A stretch of DNA of 64,000 nucleotides from positions 186,001-250,000 of the forward strand of contig NIVC01000264.1 of assembly GCA_002269645.1 (NCBI GenBank), read 5' to 3'. The translations under genes were made by a program, and so were the position numbers. The stretch is from Macrostomum lignano (Eukaryota). Position 1 is the first letter of the stretch. Every line of letters begins with the position of its first letter. Below the pieces are notes generated by a model. That model saw nothing but the letters and a program-made list of their open reading frames with translations, was not told the origin of the DNA and searched no databases. Shown here in pieces: positions 9,724-63,387 of the stretch.

Positions 9724-11131
9724 GGTAAAATACTTGATTAGACTTTATAAGCAAGACTCATAAGAGAATGGCGCATGACTAAAACTATTATACACTATTA
9801 TACTAAGACTACCATAGCTATTATTAGCTACTGGTACTCATATTGAGGGGAGCTACTAAAGCATTGCTATTCTTTTTGTAGGTTACTTTCTTGCAGCCTT
9901 GTCTTACTAGCTTTCCTAGGCCTACCTACTTATCTCCTTTCTAACATTATCTAATATTGGGGGCAATAACACATTGAGCCAAATTCCTTCCCTAGCTCCC
10001 TAAAGAGTGGCAGACTTGGTGTGTAGCCTAGGCCCTACTTCACAAAATGGCCTATGGCTTTAGTTTTACAAAACGACTTAGGCCAATAAATTTATAGGCC
10101 TATATCTATATTCTAAATATAACTAACAAGTCACAAGTGCAATAAAATTATATAAATGCTTGAATATCAATAAAAACATTAAATTATCTTAGAATTGAAT
10201 ATATTGAATAAGATGATTATTTCTGCATTCTGCTTAAAACCACAATGCAATGCCAATACTAACTTGGCTATTATCAAAAGGGTCTTTTTCTTACTAAAAT
10301 AACTTTTGCTTGCCACTGAAACAACTGTCATGGAATTGGAAACATCTTGTTACCAAAATGACTGTAATCTGATGAATAATACATGAATAATAATTTTTAA
10401 TAATTTGAATAATAATAGAAATCAGCCATACTCATACTCTGTACTTTGTAGTTGACTCTCCTATTTATTCATGTAGTAGTGATATAATTGTAAAAAATCT
10501 TTATAGGCTAGCGATATATAACGATATTTAATGTTAAATCACACTGAGTTACTTCTTATATATATCAGGGCTAGATATCTACTCTACTCTCTAGGCCTAC
10601 TCTGTCTAACAGTTGCTAAAAACTACAGTAACCTCTCCTCTCACTGGCACTGCTCGTCTAGAAGCATGTGATTTCGTATTTTGCTGATACTTTCCTTAAA
10701 TTTTTGGGTTTTATTGCATAAAAATATGTTAATTACAAAACCATAGTTCTAATTGATAAGCTCAGTATTTGTTTTTATCTTTACTGTCAAAGTGTAAAAA
10801 ACAAAATTTTGTTATAACCTAAAGCGAAAATCTTTAAAACTTTTGAAATTTTCGCTGACGTTAACAGACTGCACTGTGGGACTTAGGCAGTCGTATGGAA
10901 TAGTATATGCTAAGTTTTCTTTTTTTCTTTAGTCACTAATACTCTTCACTTGGAACTGAATCCCTTACCTAAATAAAATGCACTTCGCTGCTTAAAACTA
11001 TTCGACAGTCACTTCGGAAGTAATGAATTTCCAGTAGCCATTGTAAAAATCAAGCCATAATTAGCATCCGTCTACTCAGCTGTTTGTGTAAAAACTGGCT
11101 ATTGAGCAAAGTTTTATAACCTTGAAATAAT

Positions 11132-13715
11132 ATGGACTTTAAAAAAATTGCCGGAGGAATTACAGCTTCGATAAATCGGGCAGTTCAGGTAATTTTTCAT
11201 TATTTTTGTTCCGTCTTTTTTACAGATTCATTTATTATTAAGATATTTAATTATAATAGGACAAATTAAATAAAAAATTAAAATACTTTGACAATCAACT
11301 TTCTCGAATGATTTACATAAATACTGTATTTTCTATGAATAAAGTTTCGGTTTATATTCTTTGATTTTTTGATTACAGCTCACAGAAGAGAAACTGGGAC
11401 AGACTGAGCGCACTCAATATGACGCTGAGTTTGAGGCGCTCCTGCTGCTGGCCGACCGCTCCGAGAAGTGGACGGAGCGCATGGCCAAGGCGTCCGAGGC
11501 CGTGATGCAGCCCAACCCGGCCTACCGGGTGGAGGATTTCTTCAGCGGCAAGCTGGAAGCTGCCGGGCACCGGCGTCGGGAGCGGCCCTCGCCGCTCGAG
11601 GAGCTGGGCAGCGCGCTGGTGGCTGCCAGCAGCGAGATCGGCGGCATTGGAGTCGACGAAGGCGGCGGCGGCGGGATCAAGTTTACTGCGCAGGTGACTG
11701 TGGGAGTGATAAGACATCCCTCAATAGCACACAAGAAGCCTGTTGGGGGATCCCCATTTCCTGTAGCTCATAATCCCTATTTCCTGTAACTCATAGTCTC
11801 CAATTCCTGTAGCTCATAATCCCCCAATTCCTGTAGCTCATAATCCCCAATTCCTGTAGCTCATAATCCCCAATTCCTGTAGCTCATAATCCCCATTTCC
11901 TATAGCTCATAATCCCCAACTCCTGTAGCTCATAATCCCCAACTCCTGTAGCACAAAACCCCATTTCCTGTAGCTCATAGTCCCCATTTCCTGTAGCTCA
12001 TAGTCCCCATTTCCTGTAGCTCATAGTCCCCATTTCCTGTAGCTCATAGTCCCCATTTCCTGTAGCTCATAGTCCCCAGTTCCTGTAGCTCATAGTCCCC
12101 AGTTCCTGTAGCTCATAATCCCCAATTCCTGTAGCTCATAATCCCCAATTCCTGTAGCTCATAGTCCCCAGTTCCTGTAGCTCATAGTCCCCAGTTCCTG
12201 TAGCTCATAATCCCCGATTCCTGTAGCACAAAACCCCATTTCCTGTAGCTCATAGTCCCCATTTCCTGTAGCTCATAATCCCCATTTCCTGTAGCTAATA
12301 ACCCCCATTTCCTGTAGCTCATAGTCCCCATTTCCTGTAGCTCATAATCCCCAATTCCTGTAGCTAATAACCCCCATTTCCTGTAGCTCATAGTCCCCAT
12401 TTCCTGTGTACTTCAGAATGTCATTTCTGCAGCTCAACATCTCCATCATCTGTGGTTCGAATCCTTTAATTTCACCCAGCCAGAATCCGAAATTCCTCTT
12501 CTTCCCAAAGACTTCATCAGATGGCGCCGCCGCCACGGCCCGCTACGCGAAGTCGCTGGCGTTGGCGGGCCACGCTGAGCTGCGCCTCGCCCAGCTGGAG
12601 GCGGACTTCTTGGCCAGCTGCGGCAGCGCCTTTGTCGCTCCGCTGCGCGCCCATCTGGCTGGCGATGCGCGCTCGCTGCGTAAAGAGCGCCGGTCGCTGG
12701 AGATTTTCCGATTGGATCTTGACTGGGCCAGGACCAGGCTGCGCAGGTGCGGTGATGATGAGGCGGCGAGGAGAGCGGTGAGTGGAGCACTGAAGCTGTA
12801 CAGTTCTGAATACAAGGGCGGATCTAGAAGCTTATAATGCTGCCCGCTTACTAAATAATAGCGGCGCTTAATGAATGATAGCGGCGCTTACTGAAACTAC
12901 AATAGGTGTTAAGGAATGATAGCGGCGCTTACTGAAAAGACAGTGGCACTTACTGAATAATAAAGGCTCTTACTGAATGACAGGGGCGCTTACTGAAATG
13001 ATAGCAAAGCTTACTGAAACGAGAATAGTGCTTAATGAATGATAGCGGCGCTTACTGAATGACAGTGGCGCTTACTGAATGACAGCGGCGCTTACTGGAA
13101 TGACAGTGGCGCTTACTGAATGACAGCGGCGCTTACTGGGATGACAGTGGCGCTTACTGAATGATAGCGGCGCTTACTGAATGACAGCGGCGCTTACTGA
13201 ATGACAGTGGCGCTTACTGAATGATAGCGGCGCTTACTGAATGATAGCGGTGATTACTATACCAGCACTTACTGTAGAATTAGTTGGGTAGCAGCGCTTA
13301 CTGTAGGATTTGGAAGATAGTGGCGCTTTCTGAAGAATGGTGAGTGCGGCGGCGCTTACCAAAACGTTTTGAATGTCCTACCAATCTACTACTGCAAGTA
13401 AGTGAATTGGAAATTTCAGGCAGAACAGGAGTGCGACAAAATGGAGGCGGAATTTGAGCATCAGTTGCGAGTAACCCGACTGCTTTTAGAAGGAGTCAAC
13501 GCTACTCATGTGAGCACAGCGCTTTCATTGAGGTGAAATTGTCGACTAGTATATTTTGCTTCGATTATTTACAATTCATATCTCTACACGTCACCATCAA
13601 GGACTACCACCTGAACTGCCTGAACGAGTTGGTGGCAGCTCAGCTGAACTACCACTCCGAGTGCCTGAATCGGCTGCAGCAGCTTCAGAGACAAATGGCC
13701 GACAAGACTGAATAA
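11132..13715 (+). CDS. SH3GLB1: Endophilin-B-like N-BAR protein, 280 aa, no SH3 before the stop; exons 11132-11188, 11379-11693, 12511-12777, 13420-13509, 13602-13715
   Basis: MDFKKIAGGITASINRAVQ|LTEEKLGQTERTQYD...VMQPNPAYRVEDF...LAPLRAHLAGDARSLRKERRSLEIFRLDLDWARTRL...TRLLLEGVNATH|DYHLNCLNELVAAQLNYH matches the endophilin B BAR domain. All introns are phase 0 GT-AG. Confidence 0.88.
11750..12410. repeat. 23-bp intronic minisatellite (ttcctgtagctcataatccccaa)
   Basis: About 28 copies in endophilin intron 2. Confidence 0.9.
12850..13265. repeat. 20-21-bp intronic minisatellite (ggcgcttactgaatgacagc)
   Basis: About 19 copies in endophilin intron 3. Confidence 0.9.
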
Positions 13716-14688
13716 AGTTTTGCCCGTTTCTCTACTTGCAGTAGCAAGTTGAGCGTTTTTTATCCAATTTCTGGATGCCAGTTCAACTGAAAGCCGACTA
13801 TACTAAATGACATTAAGGCGTTAAGCGAAAGATGTCTAACTGAACACTTCCAAAAATAGCAGCTTTGAATCACGGCTTCTTTTCCTTCTGATAACGCGTT
13901 TTTTACATTTATTTTGCTTTAATTAAATTTGTTATACCTCGCTTCTTTATTTAAAAAAACTGTTGAATTTTGAATTTCAATTTAACCACGGTGAAACTAG
14001 TCCTGAGGTGCGGTGCAACTTTGCTTCCGTCTGACTATCGCGGGAAGACCACGCGATAATACTACTTACTGCGAGAGTAGCTTGAAGACATCGGTTGATA
14101 GATTTTTGTTACATGTATGTACCGTATATGTAGAAATGTATTTTTATTTATTTAATCTTATACTCGTAAAGGTAAATAGTGCTGCATTGAAATATTTTTT
14201 TTCATAAGATGCTCATAAACTCTAAGTACCTTATTGCCTATTAAATATATCGTTTTAATCTCTATTTGAGCAGCTTTTTTGAATCAATTAGTATGCTCTA
14301 GACAAGGACTTCTATAATTAGCATCTGGAGTGGAAACGAGGTTTTGACTCCTTTGGATCTGTTGGGACATTTGATGGAATTCGCGGGAAAACCATCGAAA
14401 AGAAAAGCCTAACAGGAACTGTCCTTCTCTTAAGCCACTTATAATGACAAAATGTGCTGAGAGCACAGAGCCATAGACATTCAATGCTGGACTGACGTGT
14501 AAAAAATTAAATTAATCTTTCCACTCCAGATGCTGATTATAGAACTCCTTGGCTCTAGAGAACGCAAAGCGCTGAATGAAGTTTGGCCATAGACAAATTC
14601 TGTCGATAAAAATCGAGATTTCTCGAGAGCCTACTAGGAGCCTTAGCTCCCTGCCACGGAAATGAATAAACGGGGAATAACTGATACT

Positions 14689-14977
14689 GATTACACCTGC
14701 CATAATGGGCAGATGCGCAACCAACAGCTCAGCCGCAGCTATTGCGCAACGCATCTGAAGGCTGCGTACGGCTGTTCAGTCCAAGGACTGGGGGTCGCCA
14801 CACTCACCCTCAATTACCCCAGCTCATGCTGACACCCATTTTACAGCTGGGTGAACTGCAGCACTGCAAAGTTAAGTGTCTTGCTCAATGACACAAATTG
14901 TTGCTAGTGGGATCGGGAATCGAACCGCCGACCTTCAAGTCGTGAGTGCGAGGCTCTAACCACGAGGCTACAACCCC
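14689..14977 (-). mobile_element. tRNA-derived SINE with MIR/CORE-like central domain, copy 1
   Basis: Minus strand: A-box-like TAGCCTCGTGG, B box GGTTCGATTCC, then TGTGTCATTGAGCAAGACACTTAAC...CAGTTCACCCAGCTGTAAAATGGG. A second copy lies at 60913-61161. Confidence 0.8.
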
Positions 14978-15942
14978 AAGAGTAAATGCACTAGCGTTAA
15001 CGACAGATATGTGTACTATAAATCTACAATATCCGCCGAAATTTGTTCTGTGGAAATGAAAGTCCGAGACTGCAGCGCAGCTATCCGGCCGAGGCGAAGC
15101 AGTCTTCTTGGACTCAATTTGAGGCCAGTTGTATGAAGTCTGACCATAGACTACGCGAAAGTGAGACATCCTACGGAAAAGAAAGGCCAAGTTAAATAAG
15201 CCATTAATCAGTTTCAGTACGGTAGGTTAAATGGCCTCCAGGTGGTTTCTAAGAAAATCGAGAGTAATCGAGAGTCCACGCTTCAAGTTCATAACTATGC
15301 TGGCAATAAATAATAAAAATAAGCTGTATTTATTGTTGTTATGCCCTCGAGAGCAAATCGGCGGCCAAGGCTTAGTGGATGCTGGTATTCGCATATATTT
15401 ATTTGATATAATAATTTATCAGGTTTGCAACAGATCTACCAGCTCATAATTAAACAGCAGTTTATATCTTCACAGACGTTCAGATTCTCACTACTAGCTG
15501 GGAATATAAAAATAAATGTGTTGAGAGGGTTGCATACAATATAATGTGCTGTGTCCATGAGGTATGCTTTGTATTATTATGGAGAGCGAGAGAGAGAGAG
15601 AGCGAATTCGAAAAAGTGCCTCAAAACGTTTTGAAAAATAATAAAATTTGAACGTGCGCCAAAGTATGTTCAGTGCAGTAAAACAAATGAGCTTTAGTCA
15701 GATAGTATTGATTGCTGGGATTTTGGACTGTTATTTAGGGATAGCTCAGGGATTAGCGAGAATACAGGAAATGAGATACATGTACTGCATACAGTGTAAA
15801 GTGCGGTCTGGTGCAAAATCACCCAATGCCAGTTTGCCTTATTCAATGCAGTCAGACAAGTTTTTTGAAGTCAGCGCATTGTTGCTTGCGACGGGCAAGA
15901 TTGCCGCTATGACTTGCGAGTCTGGAAAATTAATTATCATTG

Positions 15943-16053
15943 TAGCTAAACTGTCTGTAAGCTGTAGCTAAACTGTCTGTAAGCTGTAGCTAAACTGTCT
16001 GTAAGCTGTAGCTAAACTGTCTGTAAGCTGTAGCTACTGTAAACTGTCTGTAA
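15943..16053. repeat. 22-bp minisatellite (gctgtagctaaactgtctgtaa) just 3' of the collagen stop
   Basis: About 5 copies. Confidence 0.85.
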
Positions 16054-16091
16054 GCAATACCTGCAGCAGTCAACCGTCCGTGACGCACCTT

Positions 16092-34686
<18,595 letters not shown>

Positions 34687-35059
34687 GCTGACCCAGACTG
34701 CGAAACTCTGTCTCAGATGCAAGACTGCTCGGCGCGGAGCTGTCTTTCTTGCGTTAAAGATGAAATACAGTCCAAACTGGGCCAGAACTTCAGTACTATG
34801 GCGCACAGGGGGACCAGGCTTGCAAGCGAAGCCTATTGGCTCATAGAGGTGCAGCCAATAGGCATGCGGATTTTCAAACTCTTAGACAGATTCAGACTAT
34901 AGTTGAGTTTGATGACATCATACGAGTAATCGCTGGCTAATGACCCGACTGACACCTTTGAAAGAGTACTGACATCCCTGCACCTGACACCTTGATTTGA
35001 GATGACATTTTGCTAGCGACCTGACAGACTACAGAGACCCAACATCCATTCGAGATCCG

Positions 35060-36430
35060 ACACCTTTGTTACATAGCTATCTGACATTTTTACCCGAGCT
35101 CTGACACCTTTGTTACATAGCGATCTGACATCTTTACCCGAGCTCTGACACCTTTGTTACATAGCGATCTGACATCTTTACCCGAGCTCTGACACCTTTG
35201 TTACATAACGATCTGACATCTTTACCCGAGCTCTGACACCTTTGTTACATAGCGATCTGACATCTCTACCCGAGCCCTGACACCTTTGTTACATAGCGAT
35301 CTGACATCTTTACCCGAGCCCTGACACCTTTGTTACATAGCGATCTGACATCTTTACCCGAGCTCTGACACCTTTGTTACATAGCGATCTGACATTTTTA
35401 CCAGAGCCCTGACACCTTTGTTACATAGCGATCTGACATCTTTACCCGAGCTCTGACACCTTTGTTACATAGCGATCTGACATTTTTACCCGAGCCCTGA
35501 CACCTTTGTTACATAGCGATCTGACATCTTTACCCGAGCCCTGACACCTTTGTTACATAGCGATCTGACATCTTTACCAGAGCCCTGACACCTTTGTTAC
35601 ATAGCGATCTGACATCTTTACCCGAGCTCTGACACCTTTGTTACATAGCGATCTGACATCTCTACCCGAGCCCTGACACCTTTGTTACATAGCGATCTGA
35701 CATCTTTACCCGAGCCCTGACACCTTTGTTACATAGCGATCTGACATCTCTACCCGAGCCCTGACACCTCTGTTACATAGCGATCTGACATCTTTACCCG
35801 AGCTCTGACACCTTTGTTACATAGCGATCTGACATCTTTACCAGAGCTCTGACACCTTTGTTACATAGCGATCTGACATCTTTACCAGAGCTCTGACACC
35901 TTTGTTACATAGCGAACTGACATCTTTACCAGAGCCCTGACACCTTTGTTACATAGCTATCTGACATCTTTACCCGAGCTCTGACACCTTTGTTACATAG
36001 CTGTCTGACATTTTTACCCTAGCCCTGACACCTTTGTTACATAGCTATCTGACATCTTTACCCGAGCTCTGACACCTTTGTTACATAGCGATCTGACATC
36101 TCTACCCGAGCTCTGACACCTTTGTTACATAGCTATCTGACATCTTTACCCGAGCTCTGACACCTTTGTTACATAGCTGTCTGACATTTTTACCCGAGCT
36201 CTGACACCTTTGTTACATAGCGATCTGACATTTTTACCCGAGCTCTGACACCTTTGTTACATAGCGATCTGACATCTCTACCCGAGCCCTGACACCTTTG
36301 TTACATAGCGATCTGACATTTTTACCCGAGCTCTGACACCTTTGTTACATAGCTGTCTGACATTTTTACCCTAGCTCTGACACCTTTGTTACATAGCGAT
36401 CTGACATCTTTACCCGAGCTCTGGCACCTT
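35060..36430. repeat. 44-bp minisatellite (ctgacacctttgttacatagcgatctgacatctttacccgagct)
   Basis: About 31 copies; unit starts at 35101 and 35145. Confidence 0.95.
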
Positions 36431-36646
36431 TGCCCGTAGTAGGCAGTCAATCTACTGGATCGCAAATCAAATCTACCCCAATAAAATTACGAAATTAACA
36501 AAGCCGGAAAAAGTCAGTCAACAGAAACAGTTGTTCACACCCTTTCCGCAAGTACGCGGGGCCCTTCGACACAAAAATCCAAGATTTGTAATTATTTTCC
36601 AATAGTAAATTTATATTAATTTTATTATTATTAGTTACCTTGGATA

Positions 36647-39375: not shown

Positions 39376-42130
39376 CTAGTGGGGATGGCTGGAGACGGAC
39401 AGGTAGGTGTGGGCGCCGCGATTCTCGGGAGTGCCGCCAGGTACAAAGGAGCCCGGCGGCCGGACCACGCCCACATTGTAGTTTGGCGGGAACTGCGGCT
39501 GCTGCTGCGGCTGAGGAGAGAAGAACTGCTGCTGCTGTCTGCTTCGTGGACCCCGCTGCTGCTGCTGCTGCTGAGGCACCGCGTAGCCAACAGCTGCCGG
39601 GGCAACAGCGGGATGATGCTGCGGCATGGGGACAGCGAGCGAGTGCAGCTGCGGATGGAACTGCTGGTGCTGCGGCTGGTAGAACTGAATGGCAGCGGAG
39701 GCGGCCTGGTGGGCCTGGGGAGCGGCATAGTAGGCCTGGTGAGGGTCCGGCAGTGCCGCTGGAGCGGCGGCTCCGTAGGGCCAGGCGGCCGGGGGAGCCA
39801 TGGCTATCATTGGACCGGCGGCCGCCGCGTACTGGGCGGCCACGGCGGCCATCGCCGATGGGTTGTGCGGCTGCGGCTGCAGAGGCGCGGCCGGCTGCTG
39901 CTGCTGCGGCTGAGGAATCTGGGCCGGGCCGGACACCTGAACCTGCGGCTGCTGGGGCATGGGAGCCGGCACGTACTGAGGCTGCGGCGGCGGCGGTGGC
40001 GGCGGCGGAGGAGGCTGGTGGGCCTGATGATGATGGTGGTGATGTGGAGCCGGCGGCGGGGGCGGCGGCATCGGGTGCTGGTGATGCTGGGCAAAGTGGC
40101 CGTGAGGAGGATGATGAGGTGGCCCGTGATGCTGCACTGGCATCATCTGTTGGTACCTGGCCATACGTCGCTCCTCCTTTCTCTGCTTGGCTCGCTCAGA
40201 CACTGGCCGGGCCATACTGACCGACAGCTGATTTCCGGCCAGCTCCGTCCCGTTCATGGCCTCCACCGCGCGGACCGCCGCGTCCCGATTGGCGAAGTGC
40301 ACGAAAGCGTACTCGGACTGCACCAGGCGGACTCGCTCTGGCTGGCCGCAGTCTGCGCCAGCGAAGGCCTCGGCCAGCTGCTGCTCAGTGACTGACGGCG
40401 AGATGCCGCGAACGTAGACGGCGCGGACCGTCTCTAGCGCGGCCGGGTCTGGCTCCTCCAGCGGGTCGGCCCAGTCCACCCAAACGTCGGCGGCGGCCGG
40501 CCAGACGCGGGGCTGGCGCTGCAGACGGCGCCTGGCTGCGCTGGCCGCGCTGTGCTTCTTGAATTCAACGAAGCAGAAGCCGCGATTCTTGCGCTGTACG
40601 CCGGGGACGCCGCCGCCGCCGTTGGGGCCGGTTGGCGCGGTCACGATGACGTCAACAACGCCGTCGAGGTGGCTCTGGAAGTCGGCTAGCAGCTCCTCGC
40701 GGCTCTTCGTCTTTGGCACGTTGCCGACAAACAGGCGCAGATTGGGGTTGGTGATGTTCACCTGGGAGAGGCGGGGTAAACGGCGGGAGTAACTATGCAA
40801 TTCCAAACAATAGTAAGTACGCCGTCACCATATCAGCAATGGGCAAGGTAATAATTGTTCCTCCAATCTCTACCCTCTCTCACTGTATCTCTACCCCACT
40901 TTCACTGTATCTCTACCCTCTCTCAGTGTATCTCTACCCCTCTTACTGTATCTATACCCCTCTCTCACTGAATCTCTACCCCTCTCTCACTGTATCTGTG
41001 CCCCTCTCTCATTGTATCTGTACCCCTCACTCACTCCTCACTCTCTCTCTCTCCCTCTCTCTCTCGCCCTCTCAACCGACCTGCAGGTGCCGCCGCGTAG
41101 CAGCCTCGTAGCCGTTGAACTTCTCCACAGCCGCGGCAGCGTCCTCTTTGTCGGCGTAGCACACGAAGCCGAAGCCGCGGCAGCAGCCGGTGTTCGGGTC
41201 CACCATGACGCGAACATCGCACACGTTGCCAACACTGGAAAACAGCTCGTACAGCTGGTCCTCGTACATGCCTCTGGGCAGATGGCCGACAAACACTTCC
41301 CGGCCGGCGGGGTCCAGCGCCGCCTGCGGGGAGTAGCAAGCAAATGGGAAGACAGGCCTCAGCTAGGAGGTCCCGGGCTGGAAACCAGACGGGGCCACAT
41401 TTCAACTAACAGCAATAAGTGGTGGCTAATTTAGTCCGTTCCGCACCACACATTCAGTTGAGGCTTGTAGCACGAAACTTTGACCCGGGGGTCAGGGCCT
41501 GCTGCTGTACATCCTGTGTGAGCGTTTGCATAAGGCGATACTCCGGGGCGCTCACAACACTCCTGCGAATATACTCAGCAACAGTACTCACTCACTAAAG
41601 AATGTCCCTTCAGGACGCCATAAGTACTAACAAGCGCAAATCACCTGCTCTCCATTGGTTGCCGGTCCCAGTCGGCGCTGGCCAACAGTGACGAAGTGCT
41701 CCAGCCCGGTGCGCTCCAGCAGAGCTTTCAGCGCCTGCGGATCGGGGCCCAGATTGCCCGGTCCAGCCGCCTGCGGCTGCTGCTGGTAGCGGTACTGCTG
41801 ATAGTGCTGCTGCTGATGCTGGCCACCGCCGTTGCCAATGACAACGCCGTTAGGAACCGGCCTTGCCGCAGAGTCGCCAGCGCCAGTGGCTACATTAGTT
41901 GATGATGAGGCCGCTTGGTCAGCTGGTGGAGCCTCCGCAGTGGATGACTCATCGTCAGTGTCCAGTGTGCCATTGCCATTCTGCTTTGGTGGCTGCGGCG
42001 TTGCTTTCGTATCCAAGGACACCGCCTCCATGGCTGAGGCAGCAGACTCTGCATCAGCTGCTGCCTCGGCTGCTGGAGCGGGCATCTTGGCTGGGCCCGC
42101 CTTTGATTTGCTCGATGCCGCCTTTGACAT
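39376..42130 (-). CDS. SYNCRIP: hnRNP Q/R (SYNCRIP)-like triple-RRM protein; exons 42130-41645, 41323-41081, 40761-39376
   Basis: GPDPQALKALLERTG...VTVGQRRLG; RRM1 EVFVGHLPR...VMVDPNTGCCRGFGFV; RRM2 RLFVGNVPKTKSRE...KNRGFCFVEF...AARRRL...VDWADPLEEPDP; RRM3 AFVHF...AVEAMNG. These are hallmark hnRNP Q/R motifs. The symbol could equally be HNRNPR. Confidence 0.9.
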
Positions 42131-54660: not shown

Positions 54661-56368
54661 ATGTCTTGGCAAATGCGATTACTTTTAATATTTCCTGTTT
54701 ATCTACATGTTGTCAAAGGTTTCTATGCTATAATTGTAAGGGCCAGAATTTATGAACTGCTAATGCTTCGGTACAGGAAAATAGGTATCCGCAAATCGCT
54801 GCTCAGCATCCTACTATATTTCAGGCGAGCTCCCCAGTCGCCGGAGCCGCGTGCTGAGCACCTGGCAGTCCTCATTTGGCGATGGACCAGCAGATTCTAC
54901 AGCAGAAGCCAGGATGATGAAGAATCCATATTGAGCAACAAGACACTCAGCTAGTGCGTCCAAAGCGCCAGCAAGCACGAGGCAGACGGCGGGTTTCACT
55001 GGTTCGCAGTGCAGCTGAATGAGCCAGTGCTCATCAGATCTGTGACTGTGAAGGGCAGAGAGGGTGAGTCACTCACTCAAATGCGTGCTCAAAGTCTGCT
55101 GTCTCTGCTCACGGTGCTCTCGCATTCCAGATGGTGCATCGTGGGTCTTTGAAAGAGCCAGAGGCATTGAGATCTGGACATCAGACAGCAGCAGTCAGCT
55201 GTTCTCAGGAGATCACTGCAGCTCAAGGAGCATGAGCAGCCAGTTCAGAGAGTCCCAGCAGCACTGGATGATGTTCGGTTTTAGTCGCTTTAGTCTTGAG
55301 AAATCAAAACATTGTCTTCAGTAGTAAACTGAAGCAGCCCCGAGTGAAAAAGTTACCTGTTTGTGCCATTACCATCGCAGATCAGACACCTGCTGCTCCG
55401 CAAAGACGTATCCGCGATTCAATCGTCAAGCTATTTCGACTTCCTAAGCATAGCAGATCTCAGGCTGCAGAGAATGCAATTAAGTTAGTCTGCTTCATGG
55501 TTTTGAAAATGGTCTGGTTGTTATCAGTCACAGTTCTATTGTACATTTCAGAGATTTCGAAGCCCCAAATGGTTCTAGAAGGATCCAACTTCACGGTGCG
55601 CTGTGTTCCCCACTGTCAGGGCTGCGGTCTGTCCGGAAATTGTAGCATCCCTCAGCTCTGCTTTCCATCTGGCAGCTGTGTAGTCGGTCAGCAGGTGCAA
55701 CTTTTTAAGGCGCGGCTTCTGCACTCTGGAAACTTCACCTGCTAACTAGGTCACGTTGTGAGGCGTACAGTATATCCGTCACTGTTCTGCGTGAGTACGA
55801 TTTGGGCAGGAACTTGTGCAATTATCTTGATATTTCAACTCGCGGATGTTATTTTAAACACTCGACAGGTCATTGTCGTTCATCAAGTGAACCATTTTTG
55901 GGGCAGTTTTCGCAGCGGTCCTTGTCGCTGTCGGATTCGTCCTTGGCTTCGTGACTGCGACCATCATTGTGTGCGGGTTTTTCCGAGTAAGTCGTGCTCG
56001 GTGAGATCCCCGAGTTTGTAAGAATCTTTCTGATTAAGAGTTTCAAATTTTCTGCTATTATCGATAGTATTATTAATTATAATTATAATTATTCAAAAAA
56101 ATTATTTCGATAGTTTTCGATAGAGCCGACGAGCCGGGACTTATATACGCTTGTGCGGCCCCAAAAATATCCCAAACTTTCTCAAGACATCTTGTTATCA
56201 ATAATATTCCGCAGGGTGCTGCGTGCTTATCTGTCATCTGAACAACCTCACGCTCTGCTTTGCACACTACTACTACTACTAAAGCCCGTTTTCATGCGTC
56301 TTATTATCGTTTTTATTCAGGTGTCCGCCTACTGGCGCAGTCCTGCTGGAGTTAACACAGTCGGGGTG
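54661..56368 (+). pseudogene. Disrupted paralog of the F-type lectin/Ig receptor (copy A); exons ~54661-54718, 54825-55063, 55131-~55268, 55381-55483, 55549-~55790, ~55871-55984, 56321-56368
   Basis: Same exon series as copy B. Lesions: 1-nt deletion near 54890, TAG at the TAC position (~54932), loss of the end of lectin exon 2, TAA after the Ig cysteine (~55744), and further frameshifts before the Ig donor and the TM segment. A possible extra exon lies at ~57301-57367. Confidence 0.75.
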
Positions 56369-58560: not shown

Positions 58561-58810
58561 ATCTTTTCACATATACCTGTGGCTTTTCAACTCAGTGATT
58601 TCATTATATTTAGCCACACAATTTCGCCTTTCGACAGCTTTTTACAGGTGTAAACTATATTTATTTAAACCATAGCCATTACTGCTGTCTGAATATTGAT
58701 TTAAACAGTTCTTGATGTTTTGAATAATAGAATTTGAATATGACAGGGATACTGGTGCATAAGCAATTCGTGTCCATCTCCTTTTTCAAATTTCCGCAAA
58801 TCAGACAGAC

Positions 58811-61800
58811 TCAGCCAATGTAAATTTCAGCTGCGTTCTCCAGCTTGTACTCAGAGTTCTCATACTCTGTTGCCGCATCCTGAGGTCTCCCAGAAGCTGA
58901 TCCTCCGCCTCGGCTCAACTGAAAGCGAAGTTTGCTGCGGATTATGCTTACGCGAATAGTACGAGGGCTGTCCCAAAAGTAGTGTTAGTTTTCTTTATAT
59001 CTTTCATTATGATGATCCAAATAACACCATTTTGCACCGTTTTGTAGTGGCAACTCTCTTCTTCATGTATATGAAATCCGAATTGCTTATTTTTGTAGCT
59101 TTCTCTTGAGCCGGGCCGAATGCGGTGCAGCTAGTCGGCGAAGCCCCGACTGGGGTGTGGGGGCGAAGCCCCCACATTGGAACCATAGACAAATTTTCCA
59201 TAAATTTAAGACAGTACTAGCTAGACGAAATCCTGATGAGACCTGATGAGCTTGATGAGACCGCTTTGGAGCGCAGAATGCTAGAGAGCTCACCTGAGTC
59301 TACACGAGCAAAAGAAAAGTGGGCGATGAATGTGTTCCGGACGTGAAAGGAGAATCGTGTCCAACTGCAAATGCAAGGCCGTCTGTCAGGACTCGCGGTG
59401 ATTAAGCCTGTCGAAGAGCTTACAAAGAATGAGATCAACGAACTGTTGCACTTCTTCGTTTTTGAGGTGAGGAAGGAGAATGGCGAAAAATATCCGCCGG
59501 GAACTCTGAAAAACTTGGTATCGATGATCCAACACTTTTACGTGAGCCTGTCGCTTCTGGAGATTCCAGCTGCGGAAACCGGTTGTGGAGATTCCGGTTT
59601 CCGCAGGTGTCAAGTCTATCATCATTGATGGAGCTAAAATCGAAATTCAGTTTAAGTGAGTTTGTGAAACGTTAAATGCACTGCCTATTATTGAAAAAAA
59701 AACGTAATATGTTTCCTAGATAACCCTACCAATTGTCCATGGCTTAGCTAGAAAATTGATTTTTTGTTGCTTCGTTATACAGTATATAATAACAGTTTTT
59801 TTGTTGCATCCAAGTACACTGTCTAGTTCTGTTTAGTCTATGGTTCAAACTGCTTTCATTCAGGGACCATCAAATCATTTGATGTGCCTGAAATTATAGC
59901 ACTTTAAACCATAGACTAGGCTTTCCTGGCTCAGAATGAGCCCAATAAATGTCAATAAAATAAGTAATCGGATTTTATATAAGATCACGGTAGTTTAATG
60001 CGCATTCTATGGTAGAAAGTCCTCGGCCACACTTAATGGTCCTCGGCTCGCTTCGCTCGCCTCGAGACCATCAACTGCAGCCTCGGACTTTCTAACCCTA
60101 GAATGCGCATTAAACATCCATGATTATATACAAGATATATCGTGGTTTTCAGGTCGGTATTTGTTTAAATGAAATTAATGAAATATATGGTTAACAATTA
60201 ATGCCGAACAAGTTTGGACCATAGACAAAGCCACAAAACAAAACAAGCGTCAGATTAGGATTATAGAGGACTGGAGTCAACAATAGATTAAGTTTCAGTC
60301 GGGTGTAAAAGTGTCAGCGAGCAAAGTAGCGTAGGAGGCTTGTCTGTTTATTATTGATGATGACAGTTGCAGTCCTTGAACTTAAAGCTCACGGTAGTCT
60401 GGCCCGTCTATAGTCTATGGCTTATAGCCAAGGCCTCTCACTGGCAGCGTATTAAGAATTCTAAGAGCATCGGAGCCATAGACGAAAATGGACTTCAAAC
60501 TGGATGGGGGTATGGGTCCCGGGATTTATTCGAAAACATCCCCTCCCTGAGCAACAATTAAATTACATCCATGATTTTTGGCGCAGCAAAATGAAGGAAA
60601 AAGCAATGAAGCTGAAGCCCAGTGGGAAATATCTGCTGCTTTAAAAATTTTTATGGTTCTCAAAGTTTCTCCATAGATGTCTCTTTATCAAAGCAGCCTA
60701 ACAAATAAGTCTGAGTGGCATTCAATCAAAAGTACTTTCGCTACTTTCCACTAGCTTGTTGCCCTGTGGTCGAGTTTGTGCTGCATTTTGTTCATAAATT
60801 TTGGTTCCATTGTTTTTAAAGCTGTTAAAGTTAATATGAAGAAGAGAGTTGCCGCTATAAAATTGTGCAAAATGATGTTTTTTGGATCACTACTTTTGGC
60901 CTCGTAAAAATTGATTACACCTGCCCCAATTGGCAGATGTGCAACCGACAGCTCAGCCGCAGCTATTGCGCGGCGCATCTGAAGGCTGCGTACGGCTGTT
61001 CAGTCCAAGGACTGGAGGGTCGCCACAGACACTCTCAATTACCCCAGCTAATGCTGGCGCCCATTTTACAGCTGGGTGAACACTAATTGTTTCTTGTTGG
61101 TTGAGAATCGAACCCCTGACCTTCAAGTCGTGAGTCCTACGCTCTGACCTCTACAACCACCTTGTAGCCGACGCTTACGCTAAAAGCGAAACAGTGACAA
61201 AAATAAGCATCAAGTCTGCATCAAGCAGCCACTCACCATTTCAGTTTGCTCCGCAGTGCCTTGCATCTGTTGAGCAGGTGTCGCCTGAAAACGGACACCT
61301 GTCAACTACAATTATAAAATAATCAAGTACTTTTCGTAAACATTTTCTATGTGATGCCAGGTGATTTCAGAGTTGGTAATTCACAAACAGATCTCACTCG
61401 GAACAAAGCGCAAAGGAGGCTGGATGCAGCAAAGCCGATCCCAAAGAAAGCAGCTGCACAGGCTGCGTGCCCTTTTGCGCCGAGTTCACTCAGCTTTCCT
61501 GGGCAGCTCAGTCGAGCTCTGGCGCTGTGGACTTGCCTGAACTCGATTCCTTCCGGGAGAGTCTGCACCGCACTGCAGGTGACCAGAGCACGGCTCAGTC
61601 CTTCATCATCAGTGTCCAGTTTCCATTGGCTGACTGAGCCATCCCTGCTCGAGCTCTGCTCGACCAGTGTCAGGCGAGTGAGATTTCCTATGAGCAATTC
61701 ATCGGATTCAGCGCTGCATCTGTGCTTAGGCAGCGGCTTAGAGACAGAGGATGAGAATATAACGATTATGTCAGACAGTCTCTGACAATTGTCGGACGTC

Positions 61801-63387
61801 AGCACTGAGATTAACACGGTTGACGGCGGGTCTGTAAGGTGGGGATCAGTGAAATGGCCTTATCCATGCTCTGGTTTAGGAAAACCCACATAAAATATGT
61901 CCTTCAATAACAGATGATTAACAACATTAACAAGAAAACATTTGACTTCTTCCAAAAGTTGCTATCTTCCTCATCCAAACTACGGTGACTTGCAAGTCTG
62001 ACTTGAGACAGGTGCAAAAACTCATCAACTTATTTGAAGGTAAACCCTTCGTAATCTTCTAAATACCGGATTTTGCCATTTTACAATTTACATAATCCTT
62101 AAAAGTGATTTTATTGCTCCTATAAAGAAATGCAAATGGTTCTGCAGAACCTCGAGCTCACACAGCACAGCGACTGTCGTGCGCGTCTCCACAGAGCCCA
62201 GTCTGCAGGTGTAGCTTCCAGCGTGCTGAGGCTGCGCTCTGGGAACCCGCAGCTCCTGTGATGCAGTGCAGCTGCCGTTTGGAAAGCAGAGCTGCTGCTG
62301 CTGCACATTGGATGGCGTGAAAGTCGGCTTGCCTCCACATAGCTGAGTACAGCTGACAATGAAGCTGGAGTTCTCAGCCAGAGCACCAGGTCCTGACAGC
62401 TCTGCAATGCAGATCAGAGTTTCATGGGGTTCGCATAGATGATTCAAATCAGTTTTGTTGCTTCTACGGGTAACAGGTGCAAAGTGTATTAAATAAATCC
62501 TATATTTTCCCTCACTCAGCTGCACTGTTTGAAGCATCAGGTCAGTAAAGCTCAAGAAGTCATGGTAACTCGAACTGTTTGCTGCAGCAACGTTTTTACG
62601 AAGCAGCAGGTGCCTCATCTGGAATTCGTTTTATTACAGATCATAATTCAGATGCTGAAGTTTCCATGCAACAAGAGGCGTAGATAAAAATGATTATAAT
62701 AACTTCTTACCTTTGCAACGCAGTTTACAGTAAAGATCTCCCCAGCTGCGATCTGTGAATTGTTGCTCTCCGTGACCCCACACAGTCTCCAGTGCTGCTG
62801 GGACTCTCTGAACTGGCTGCTCATGCTCATTGAGCTGCAGTGATCTCCTGAGAACAGCTGGCTGCTGCTGTCTGATGTCCAGATCTCAACGCCTCTGGCT
62901 CTTTCAAAGACCCACGATGCACCATCTGGAATGCGAGAGCACCGTGAGCAGAGACAGCAGACTTGGAGCACGCATTTGAGTGAGTGATTCACCCTCTCTG
63001 CTCTTCACAGTCACAGATCTGATGAGCAGTGACTCATCCAGCTGCACTGCGAACCAGTGAAACCCGCCGTCTGCTGAGCTCTTTTCTTTGCTGTGGAAGA
63101 ACCGGTAGCTAAAGGTTTTGTTTTTGAGCACGGATTCCTCATCAGTGTGGCTTCTGTTGAAAAAGCAAGTCGGGCCGTCATCAAAGGACGACTGCCAGGT
63201 GCTCAGGACGCGGCTCTGGCGAATCGGGAACTCACCTGCAATGGTGAGCACAGGAAGTCAAGCACAAATTGGTAATTTGTTTTAGCATAGCATGAGATTC
63301 AGTAGCAAGCACAGACTTACAGTCTCCGTAGACTGTAGCGCTCACCGATGCCATCAGCAGCGACATCAAACGGAGCCAGGATCTCAT
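58811..63387 (-). CDS. Type I membrane receptor: signal peptide, F-type (fucolectin-like) lectin domain, Ig-like domain(s), TM, Tyr-bearing tail (copy B, ~485 aa). Exons 63387-63321, 63235-62993, 62925-62711, 62618-62516, 62401-62162, 61831-61398, 61284-61237, 58918-58811
   Basis: Signal MRSWLRLMSLLMASVSATVYG; FH...HWFAVQLDESLLIRSVTVKSRE|DGASWVFERARGVEIWTS...LCG fits the FTL W..V.L....I..V....R.D...ER pattern; Ig ...QHAGSYTCRLG...TVAVLY|PP; TM AACAAAFFGIGFAASSLLCALF; tail EYENSEY...EIYIG*. Splice phases close the frame. Exon 61831-61398 may hide an intron. Confidence 0.7.
59180..59846 (+). mobile_element. Crypton-like (DUF3504 tyrosine-recombinase family) non-autonomous element with a decayed N-terminal ORF (~59237-59560)
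   Basis: SPESTRAKEKWAMNVFRT*...LTKNEINELLHFFVFEVRKENGEKYPPGTLKNLVSMIQHF matches the Crypton/ZMYM/KCTD1 motif; TGA replaces the conserved Trp; 11-bp inverted ends GAACCATAGAC / GTCTATGGTTC. Confidence 0.75.
59976..60129. repeat. Palindromic hairpin element
   Basis: Arms TTTAATGCGCATTCTA.GGTAGAAAGTCC / GGACTTTCTAACCCTAGAATGCGCATTAAA around a GGCTCGCTTCGCTCGCC core. Confidence 0.7.
60913..61161 (-). mobile_element. tRNA-derived CORE-like SINE, copy 2
   Basis: Co-linear with 14689-14977; B box GGTTCGATTCTC; lacks ~35 bp of the post-tRNA linker. Confidence 0.8.

Follow-up and report, generated by a model that had tools for sequence, protein, structure and literature searches.

A predicted gene on the minus strand of a 64,000-nucleotide window from the free-living flatworm Macrostomum lignano (contig NIVC01000264.1, positions 186,001–250,000, assembly GCA_002269645.1) appears to encode a type I membrane protein with a strongly diverged F-type-lectin fold at its N-terminus. 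Unless another contig is named, all coordinates are positions within this window, which denotes the whole stretch of DNA analysed. The gene extends from the ATG at 63387 to the last base of the TGA at 58811, the exact span given in a preliminary description of the locus. Its eight predicted exons are separated by introns that are all GT-AG and compatible in phase, and the coding sequence of 1458 nucleotides specifies 485 amino acids and a stop codon. The predicted product begins with a signal-peptide-like N-terminus, followed by the lectin-fold domain, an immunoglobulin (Ig)-like domain and a second, cysteine-containing module. A single hydrophobic helix (residues 412–433, Kyte–Doolittle 2.0) then precedes a 52-residue cytoplasmic tail. 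Seven N-glycosylation sequons are present, all of them N-terminal to this transmembrane (TM) helix, in the ectodomain. The features of the gene are as follows.

Exon 1, 63321..63387, minus strand: start codon (63387-63385) and signal-peptide-like leader MRSWLRLMSLLMASVSATVYGD; phase 1 end, donor GTAAGT.
Exon 2, 62993..63235, minus strand: first half of the F-lectin-like domain, with WQSS, Cys46 and GFHWFAVQL; codons of His70 (63095-63093), Ser75 (63080-63078, the position of His52 in eel agglutinin AAA) and Arg102 (62999-62997).
Exon 3, 62711..62925, minus strand: middle of the F-lectin-like domain, completing Asp104 and containing conserved Cys133, Cys152 and Cys172; codon of Arg112 (62902-62900), aligned with AAA Arg86.
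Exon 4, 62516..62618, minus strand: 103 nucleotides for the final strands of the F-lectin-like domain, MRHLLLRKN...FLSFTDLMLQTVQL.
Exon 5, 62162..62401, minus strand: Ig-like domain (about residues 210-289) containing five cysteines conserved in the family and a GSYTC motif.
Exon 6, 61398..61831, minus strand: cysteine-containing module (residues 290-411), TM helix (residues 412-433, 61466-61401) and stop-transfer Arg434.
Exon 7, 61237..61284, minus strand: cytoplasmic linker ATPAQQMQGTAEQTEM.
Exon 8, 58811..58918, minus strand: C-terminal tail LSRGGGSASGRPQDAATEYENSEYKLENAAEIYIG and stop; codons of Y469 (58864-58862), Y474 (58849-58847) and Y483 (58822-58820).
AATAAA hexamer, 58660..58665, minus strand: candidate polyadenylation signal read from the sequence, 146 nucleotides 3′ of the stop.

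The gene model was assembled from the three minus-strand reading frames and the sequence itself. Exon 4 was required because exon 3 ends in phase 0 and, without exon 4, the reading frame would not continue into the Ig exon. A profile of the paralog family (A5) recognises exon 4 at profile positions 153–183 (E = 1.3e-4), and a counterpart of this exon is found in paralogs P0002 to P0005. The same profile recognises exon 2 (E = 5.9e-38) and exon 3 (E = 3.9e-27), and a profile of the second module (A8) matches the exon 6 open reading frame (ORF) with E = 1.9e-46. Exon 8 is 82% identical to the tail of paralog P0001 and has the same exon border. At exon 7, an alternative in-frame acceptor at 61305 would add the seven residues LTGVRFQ, as in the P0001 database model. 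Intron 2 interrupts the codon of Asp104, leaving G in exon 2 and AT in exon 3.

Pairwise Nei–Gojobori comparisons with paralogs, which are short and rough, gave ratios of nonsynonymous to synonymous substitution (dN/dS) of 0.26–0.49 for exon 2, 0.26–0.31 for exon 3 and 0.32–0.74 for the Ig and module exons. The ratio is below 1 in every exon tested (0.26–0.74). The exons are coding sequence under constraint from purifying selection, with no bulk signal of positive selection. On the evidence of its sequence, the locus is an intact gene of eight predicted exons.

The N-terminal domain lies beyond the reach of routine domain searches. A Pfam scan of the spliced protein gave no match above threshold, the N-terminal domain reaching E = 0.13 with PF22633. 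Among PDB sequences, the spliced protein obtained sub-threshold matches only, and a profile of close paralogs obtained none. In a set of 20 family sequences and fragments, just two Pfam models were matched repeatedly, both weakly: PF00754 (seven members) and PF22633 (five members), with a best E of about 0.002; genuine F-type lectins match both models strongly.

The domain was approached through structure prediction and profile comparison. Modelling was performed on paralog P0002, which is 60% identical in an almost gap-free alignment. AlphaFold2 predicted the P0002 N-terminal domain, from an alignment of 20 sequences, with a predicted local distance difference test (pLDDT) of 88.4 and a predicted template modelling score (pTM) of 0.88. 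A full-length P0002 model from five sequences reached a pLDDT of only 37 and was not used. When the domain model was compared with the PDB by Foldseek, the striped-bass F-lectin FBP32 (3cqo_A) ranked first (E = 2e-6, TM(query) 0.50). The top 20 also included eel agglutinin (1k12, rank 10), a pneumococcal fucose-binding module, several CBM32 modules and the galactose oxidase N-domain. Of the checks that the preliminary description had proposed, the HMMER search thus stayed below Pfam thresholds, and AlphaFold returned a confident jelly roll for the domain of P0002.

Families within this fold were separated by hhalign, using an F-lectin profile made from real F-lectin sequences taken from PDB alignments. 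The flatworm family profile matched the F-type lectins with a probability of 85.8% (E = 5.3e-6, score 40.9, 97 columns). Against 100 column-shuffled F-lectin alignments it scored 11.7±2.5, with a maximum of 19.5, and against the reversed F-lectin alignment it scored 10.3. The control alignment with the factor V/VIII C domains (FA58C) returned a probability of 3% (score 21.4, 28 columns), which ruled out a discoidin FA58C domain. F-type lectins themselves score 26.1 against the factor V/VIII C domains; judged by profile scores, the flatworm domain is nearer to F-lectins than F-lectins are to discoidin domains. Because the profile score exceeds the null and the comparison with discoidin domains fails, the domain is considered a true remote relative of F-type lectins, as had been proposed from the sequence at the outset. 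It is modelled as a very divergent jelly roll of the F-type-lectin fold, comprising about 185 amino acids encoded by three exons.

The F-lectin sugar site is defined by a His/Arg/Arg triad, a Cys-Cys pair and a calcium motif, and members of the superfamily that lack the triad bind other ligands (PMC5712786). The preliminary description had read H-x31-R-E-D-x7-R, split by an intron, as a variant fucose-binding motif. The string H70-x31-R102-E-D104-x7-R112 is literally present, and the split falls within the Asp104 codon. A pattern search of the protein did not find the canonical H-x26-R-x-D-x4-R/K, and a pattern loosened to admit the observed spacing is found in 11% of shuffles of the protein. 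The alignment between the family and F-lectin profiles is ungapped from F-F-H70 to the W-rich strand, and it places the site residues of AAA as follows.

AAA non-binding His of 'NFYH': His70 here, the histidine of the earlier motif, outside the sugar site; His in 12 of 15 family members.
AAA His52, fucose-binding: Ser75 here, at exactly the canonical x26 spacing from Arg102; S, T, H, R, D or A across the family.
AAA Arg79: Arg102 here, kept; Arg in 10 of 15 family members.
AAA Asp81: Asp104 here, varying among paralogs; D, Y, V, A or S across the family.
AAA Cys82-Cys83 (CCGE): GASWVFE here, with no Cys-Cys and an insert three residues longer.
AAA Arg86: Arg112 here, preceded by a three-residue insertion; Arg in 12 of 16 family members.
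AAA AIDGN calcium motif: VLKNK here and VLSKP in P0002; not conserved.
His82 of the flatworm protein: His in 13 of 15 family members.

The histidine of the proposed motif therefore aligns with a residue that does not bind sugar, and the reading of the string as a fucose-binding motif is not upheld: the binding histidine position is Ser75, Asp104 is not conserved, and the Cys-Cys pair and calcium motif are missing. A canonical F-type lectin was ruled out by the failed motif test. With two site arginines kept and the other site residues lost or changed, the domain is best described as an F-lectin fold with a remodelled site, from which fucose binding is not inferable.

For the remainder of the ectodomain, Pfam Ig_3 and Ig_2 fell below threshold in the spliced protein (E about 0.02–0.04), and Ig_2 reached E = 2.9e-4 in paralog P0002. 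A profile of the Ig exon built from six family members (A7) matched 431 PDB sequences at E <= 10, and the best 60 of these 431 all belong to the Ig superfamily (IgSF). The matches include Robo2 (7e-9), MDGA1 (1.7e-6) and Fc-gamma-RI (5.5e-6), with best single-domain E values of 1.7e-6 to 5.5e-6, and CEACAM and Fc receptors are among the IgSF chains matched. The GSYTC motif is conserved in this exon across the family. These sequence comparisons support the presence of one Ig-like domain, encoded by exon 5.

The preliminary description had left the number of Ig-like domains open; one is supported, and the second module matches nothing. This family-specific module of roughly 120 amino acids (residues 290–411) recurs in paralogs, with several copies in P0019 and P0021. 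It has only two conserved cysteines, and their spacing of 47 residues suggests a beta-sandwich. An Ig-like label for the second module would be a guess.

The cytoplasmic tail contains Y469 (YENS), Y474 (YKLE) and Y483 (IYIG-COOH), all in an acidic context. The TM helix and a tail with YEN and two further tyrosines thus stand as first described. Grb2-type SH2 domains prefer pY-x-N, a pattern that Y-E-N fits. In P0001 to P0003, the tail is conserved across the block EYENSEYKLENAxxIYIx but not outside it. The tails of distant paralogs also have tyrosines in an acidic context (FYINS, TVYLEI, TEYLDI, MEYEQP and TYADIY). Tails were examined with the patterns [SIVL]xYxx[IVL], TxYxx[VI] and Yxx[LI]-x6-12-Yxx[LI]. 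Paralogs P0004 (TVYLEI) and P0025 (TEYLDI) fit TxYxx[VI]. A receptor with an immunoreceptor tyrosine-based inhibitory motif (ITIM) or activation motif (ITAM) was ruled out for the studied protein, the motif being absent from its tail.

A word-indexed protein search retrieved five proteins (P0001–P0005), all from M. lignano and sharing a common domain order; the closest, P0001, is 86% identical. When 1.84 billion cluster representatives were searched exhaustively by HMMER with the N-terminal-domain profile, only 19 proteins reached E <= 0.001, and the family had no detectable orthologs in other phyla in that search. The source is named for ten of the 19 relatives, nine of which are from M. lignano and one from a JGI metagenome contig. 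The latter protein (P0015), encoded on a 1598-bp contig, is about 29% identical in the lectin-fold domain and hints that the domain occurs in at least one further, unsampled organism. A search with a broader profile and a metagenome scan detected no further relatives outside M. lignano.

UniProt's automatic annotation gives these proteins names that do not agree with one another (Ig-like, Sushi, CUB, MATH, fibrinogen C-terminal, ricin B and others), and no family protein carries a precomputed Pfam domain. Literature searches on the family, its locus tags and F-type lectins in flatworms returned no results. The inconsistent names, the missing Pfam domains and the confinement of relatives to M. 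lignano therefore mark the family as uncharacterised and Macrostomum-restricted within current databases and public protein sets, consistent with the earlier impression that it has no established name.

Tandem copies of the gene occur elsewhere in the same assembly. A 22-kb stretch of NIVC01002544.1 (GCA_002269645.1) holds at least three tandem members on one strand within 12 kb, at 10001–21300. These are P0004, which lacks the Ig exon, and two members with several Ig-like exons; a fragment lies on the other strand at 2083–2196. A large protein-kinase gene is located immediately upstream of the tandem members. Elsewhere in the family, the 2224-residue P0014 has a lectin-domain fragment at residues 1974–2094, after more than 1900 residues unrelated to the family, and looks like a chimeric or read-through gene prediction, not a real architecture.

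A further, damaged copy lies within the window, convergent with the intact gene.

Degraded paralog, 54821..55985, plus strand: exon 2-, 3-, 4-, Ig- and TM-like pieces, 3 kb from the intact gene.

Its exon 2 is disrupted by a 1-bp deletion and by an in-frame TAG, exon 3 has lost its 3′ third, and the Ig exon contains an in-frame TAA. The TM exon is kept; neither a second module nor a tyrosine-tail exon was found for this copy. From about 54975 to 55270 on the plus strand, this copy is about 97–98% identical to about 63075–62780 on the minus strand, a stretch that begins midway through exon 2, spans intron 2 and ends midway through exon 3. Outside it, the two copies are about 80% identical or less, or cannot be aligned. 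This pattern of identity suggests that gene conversion has taken place between the two convergent copies over that stretch. Taken as a whole, sequence comparison identifies the locus as one member of a tandemly duplicated birth-and-death family that is known almost only from M. lignano.

Intron 7 of the intact gene contains 2.3 kb of repeat and transposon debris. An interrupted ORF on the plus strand (59347–59540) has a sub-threshold Pfam match to QRICH1 (E = 5.9e-6) and is probably the debris of a mobile-element-derived gene. The intron also contains an imperfect long inverted repeat around 59980–60110 and several copies of a CCATAGAC-containing motif. No tRNA or Rfam feature was found in the window, and a tRNA-like stretch in intron 7 is not claimed. 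Positions 1–54210 of the window hold about thirty distinct minisatellite or tandem-repeat arrays (34 rows from Tandem Repeats Finder), with periods of 4–189 nucleotides and lengths of up to 2.2 kb each; examples are 30937–33148 (period 13) and 35051–36432 (period 44). These arrays fill much of the window upstream of the two receptor genes and account for its strong local GC and AT skews. A long minus-strand ORF at 39376–40806 encodes two RNA-recognition motifs (Pfam RRM_1, E = 9e-22) and is probably an unrelated RNA-binding protein gene or exon.

The flatworm domain shares with eel agglutinin AAA (1K12) and striped bass FBP32 (3CQO) a jelly-roll fold and a significant profile match. Landmarks common to it and F-type lectins are an early QSS, F-[FY]-H, SVTV..R and both site arginines, and the W-rich strand reads GFHWFAVQL in the flatworm compared with NPWWRVDL in F-type lectins. 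Unlike F-type lectins, it is about 45 residues longer, with predicted helical inserts, and has Ser in place of His52, no vicinal Cys-Cys and no calcium motif. Its disulfide pattern also differs, with four other conserved cysteines. AAA and FBP32 are secreted, whereas the flatworm protein is predicted to be membrane-anchored, and its domain falls below the Pfam threshold.

The domain partners of F-type lectin domains given in two reviews, one of them PMC5712786, are CTLD, pentraxin, CCP, H-type lectin, FA58C and transmembrane segments, and the F-type lectin domain itself is reported to be patchily distributed. These two reviews make no mention of flatworms and name no Ig-domain partner. The view that this architecture lies outside the named families is in keeping with those lists. 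The closest parallels in layout are Drosophila Furrowed and CG9095, in which an F-lectin-type domain is carried on a single-pass membrane protein with modular spacers (PMC5712786). Those spacers are CCP repeats and a C-type lectin domain, whereas the flatworm spacers are an Ig-like domain and a family-specific module, and no sequence relationship between Furrowed or CG9095 and the flatworm family was detected beyond the lectin fold.

DCBLD2/ESDN, the neuropilins and DDR1/2 are likewise type I proteins with a membrane-distal domain of the same fold superfamily, a likeness that is a functional analogy only. DCBLD2 signals through tail tyrosines that recruit SH2 adaptors. Unlike these discoidin receptors, the flatworm protein has no FA58C profile match (3%) and no CUB, LCCL, MAM or kinase domains. 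A second set of parallels is offered by Hydractinia Alr, the vertebrate Fc receptors and the CEACAMs, which likewise are type I proteins from lineage-specific, tandemly duplicated families, with pseudogenes nearby, Ig-like ectodomains and short tails that contain tyrosines. The flatworm tail differs from these families in lacking an ITIM, an ITAM or an immunoreceptor tyrosine-based switch motif (ITSM), and its distal domain has a lectin fold and not a V-set.

The best explanation of these observations, to which we assign a probability of roughly 0.6, is that the gene encodes a lineage-specific type I recognition or adhesion receptor with an F-lectin fold, which may signal via phosphotyrosine. 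The membrane-distal domain would bind an extracellular ligand. This ligand would plausibly be a glycan, because the two F-lectin site arginines are conserved, and binding is probably not of the canonical fucose type, because the domain lacks the histidine, the Cys-Cys pair and the calcium site. The Ig-like and cysteine modules may form a stalk. Clustering brought about by the ligand would cause the tail tyrosines to be phosphorylated, and a Grb2/Drk-type SH2 adaptor could then dock at pY469-E-N. An immune, allorecognition or mating role would fit both the birth-and-death pattern and the part that F-type lectins play elsewhere in immunity and gamete recognition (PMC5712786).

Several observations weigh against this explanation. 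The predicted structure belongs to P0002, the 60%-identical paralog, and not to the studied protein. The Foldseek scores of the CBM32 modules and the galactose oxidase N-domain lie within one order of magnitude of those of F-lectins, and the fold alone therefore identifies the galactose-binding-like superfamily, not the family. The canonical sugar and calcium ligands (His52, the Cys-Cys pair and AIDGN) are largely missing. The second-module profile has no PDB match at E <= 10 and no similarity to the Ig exon. In the tail, TEY469ENS, SEY474KLE and EIY483IG-COOH fit no ITIM, ITSM or ITAM, and the tyrosine motifs could instead be sorting signals.

The alternative that survives best, itself improbable, is that of a non-signalling adhesion or structural surface protein. 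The ligand of its domain would be a protein or a lipid, much as phospholipid is the ligand of factor V C2, and its tail tyrosines would act in endocytosis or sorting or in C-terminal docking. Members of the fold superfamily do bind non-sugar ligands once the basic triad is lost (PMC5712786), but here the site keeps two of its three basic residues. The lack of an ITIM, ITAM or ITSM would suit such a protein, and YxxPhi-type motifs (YLSV, YLEI) in P0004 and P0005 fit sorting signals. Conversely, the YENSEY...IY block is conserved in close paralogs while the flanking tail is not, and Y-x-N-S appears again in the distant paralog P0016 (FYINS). The acidic context of the tyrosines is typical of tyrosine-kinase substrates and also counts against a non-signalling protein.

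Somewhat less likely again is a working fucose-binding F-type lectin, in which H-x31-R-E-D-x7-R would be a stretched canonical site and the protein a fucose-sensing immune or allorecognition receptor. F-lectins are the nearest detectable relatives of the domain and have roles in immunity and gamete recognition (PMC5712786). Between about two thirds and three quarters of members retain arginine at the Arg79 and Arg86 positions, and His70 and His82 are well conserved and close to the site in sequence. These points are set against the substitution of His52 by Ser75, at a position held by S, T, H, R, D or A in the family, and the replacement of Asp104 by Tyr, Val, Ala or Ser in paralogs. Moreover, the fucose-contacting Cys82-Cys83 has given way to the longer insert, AIDGN is aligned with VLKNK or VLSKP, and the loose motif arises by chance at the 11% rate given above. 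A non-functional locus, either a decaying copy or over-interpreted ORFs in a repeat-rich region with a distant last exon not truly joined, might be suggested by the clear pseudogene 3 kb away, the debris in intron 7 and the minisatellites that dominate the window, but it is highly improbable given eight open exons with canonical splice sites and compatible phases, dN/dS below 1 in all compared exons, a last exon 82% identical to the P0001 tail at the same border and an AATAAA 146 nucleotides past the stop.

The preferred reading, a recognition or adhesion receptor with an F-lectin fold, can be extended to a more specific proposal, which is speculative and unlikely to hold in full. A Macrostomum-specific, fast-turnover family might have recruited a remodelled F-lectin fold, with two arginines kept in a new His/Ser environment, onto an IgSF stalk and a phosphotyrosine tail, sensing a glycan derived from a partner, sperm or microbe.

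Stated modestly, the finding is a paralog family, uncharacterised and restricted to one species, with a function that is inferred. It places a strongly diverged F-lectin fold, hidden below Pfam thresholds, in a free-living flatworm, on a predicted membrane receptor with a conserved tyrosine tail. The family may serve as a natural experiment in how an F-lectin sugar site rebuilds once its histidine, Cys-Cys pair and calcium site are gone. For M. lignano, the gene provides a concrete candidate for surface recognition in immunity, mating or tissues that can be tested by RNA interference. If the protein is indeed a glycan-sensing receptor, a signalling receptor that combines lectin and Ig domains would have arisen independently in a flatworm that serves as a model for sexual conflict and regeneration.

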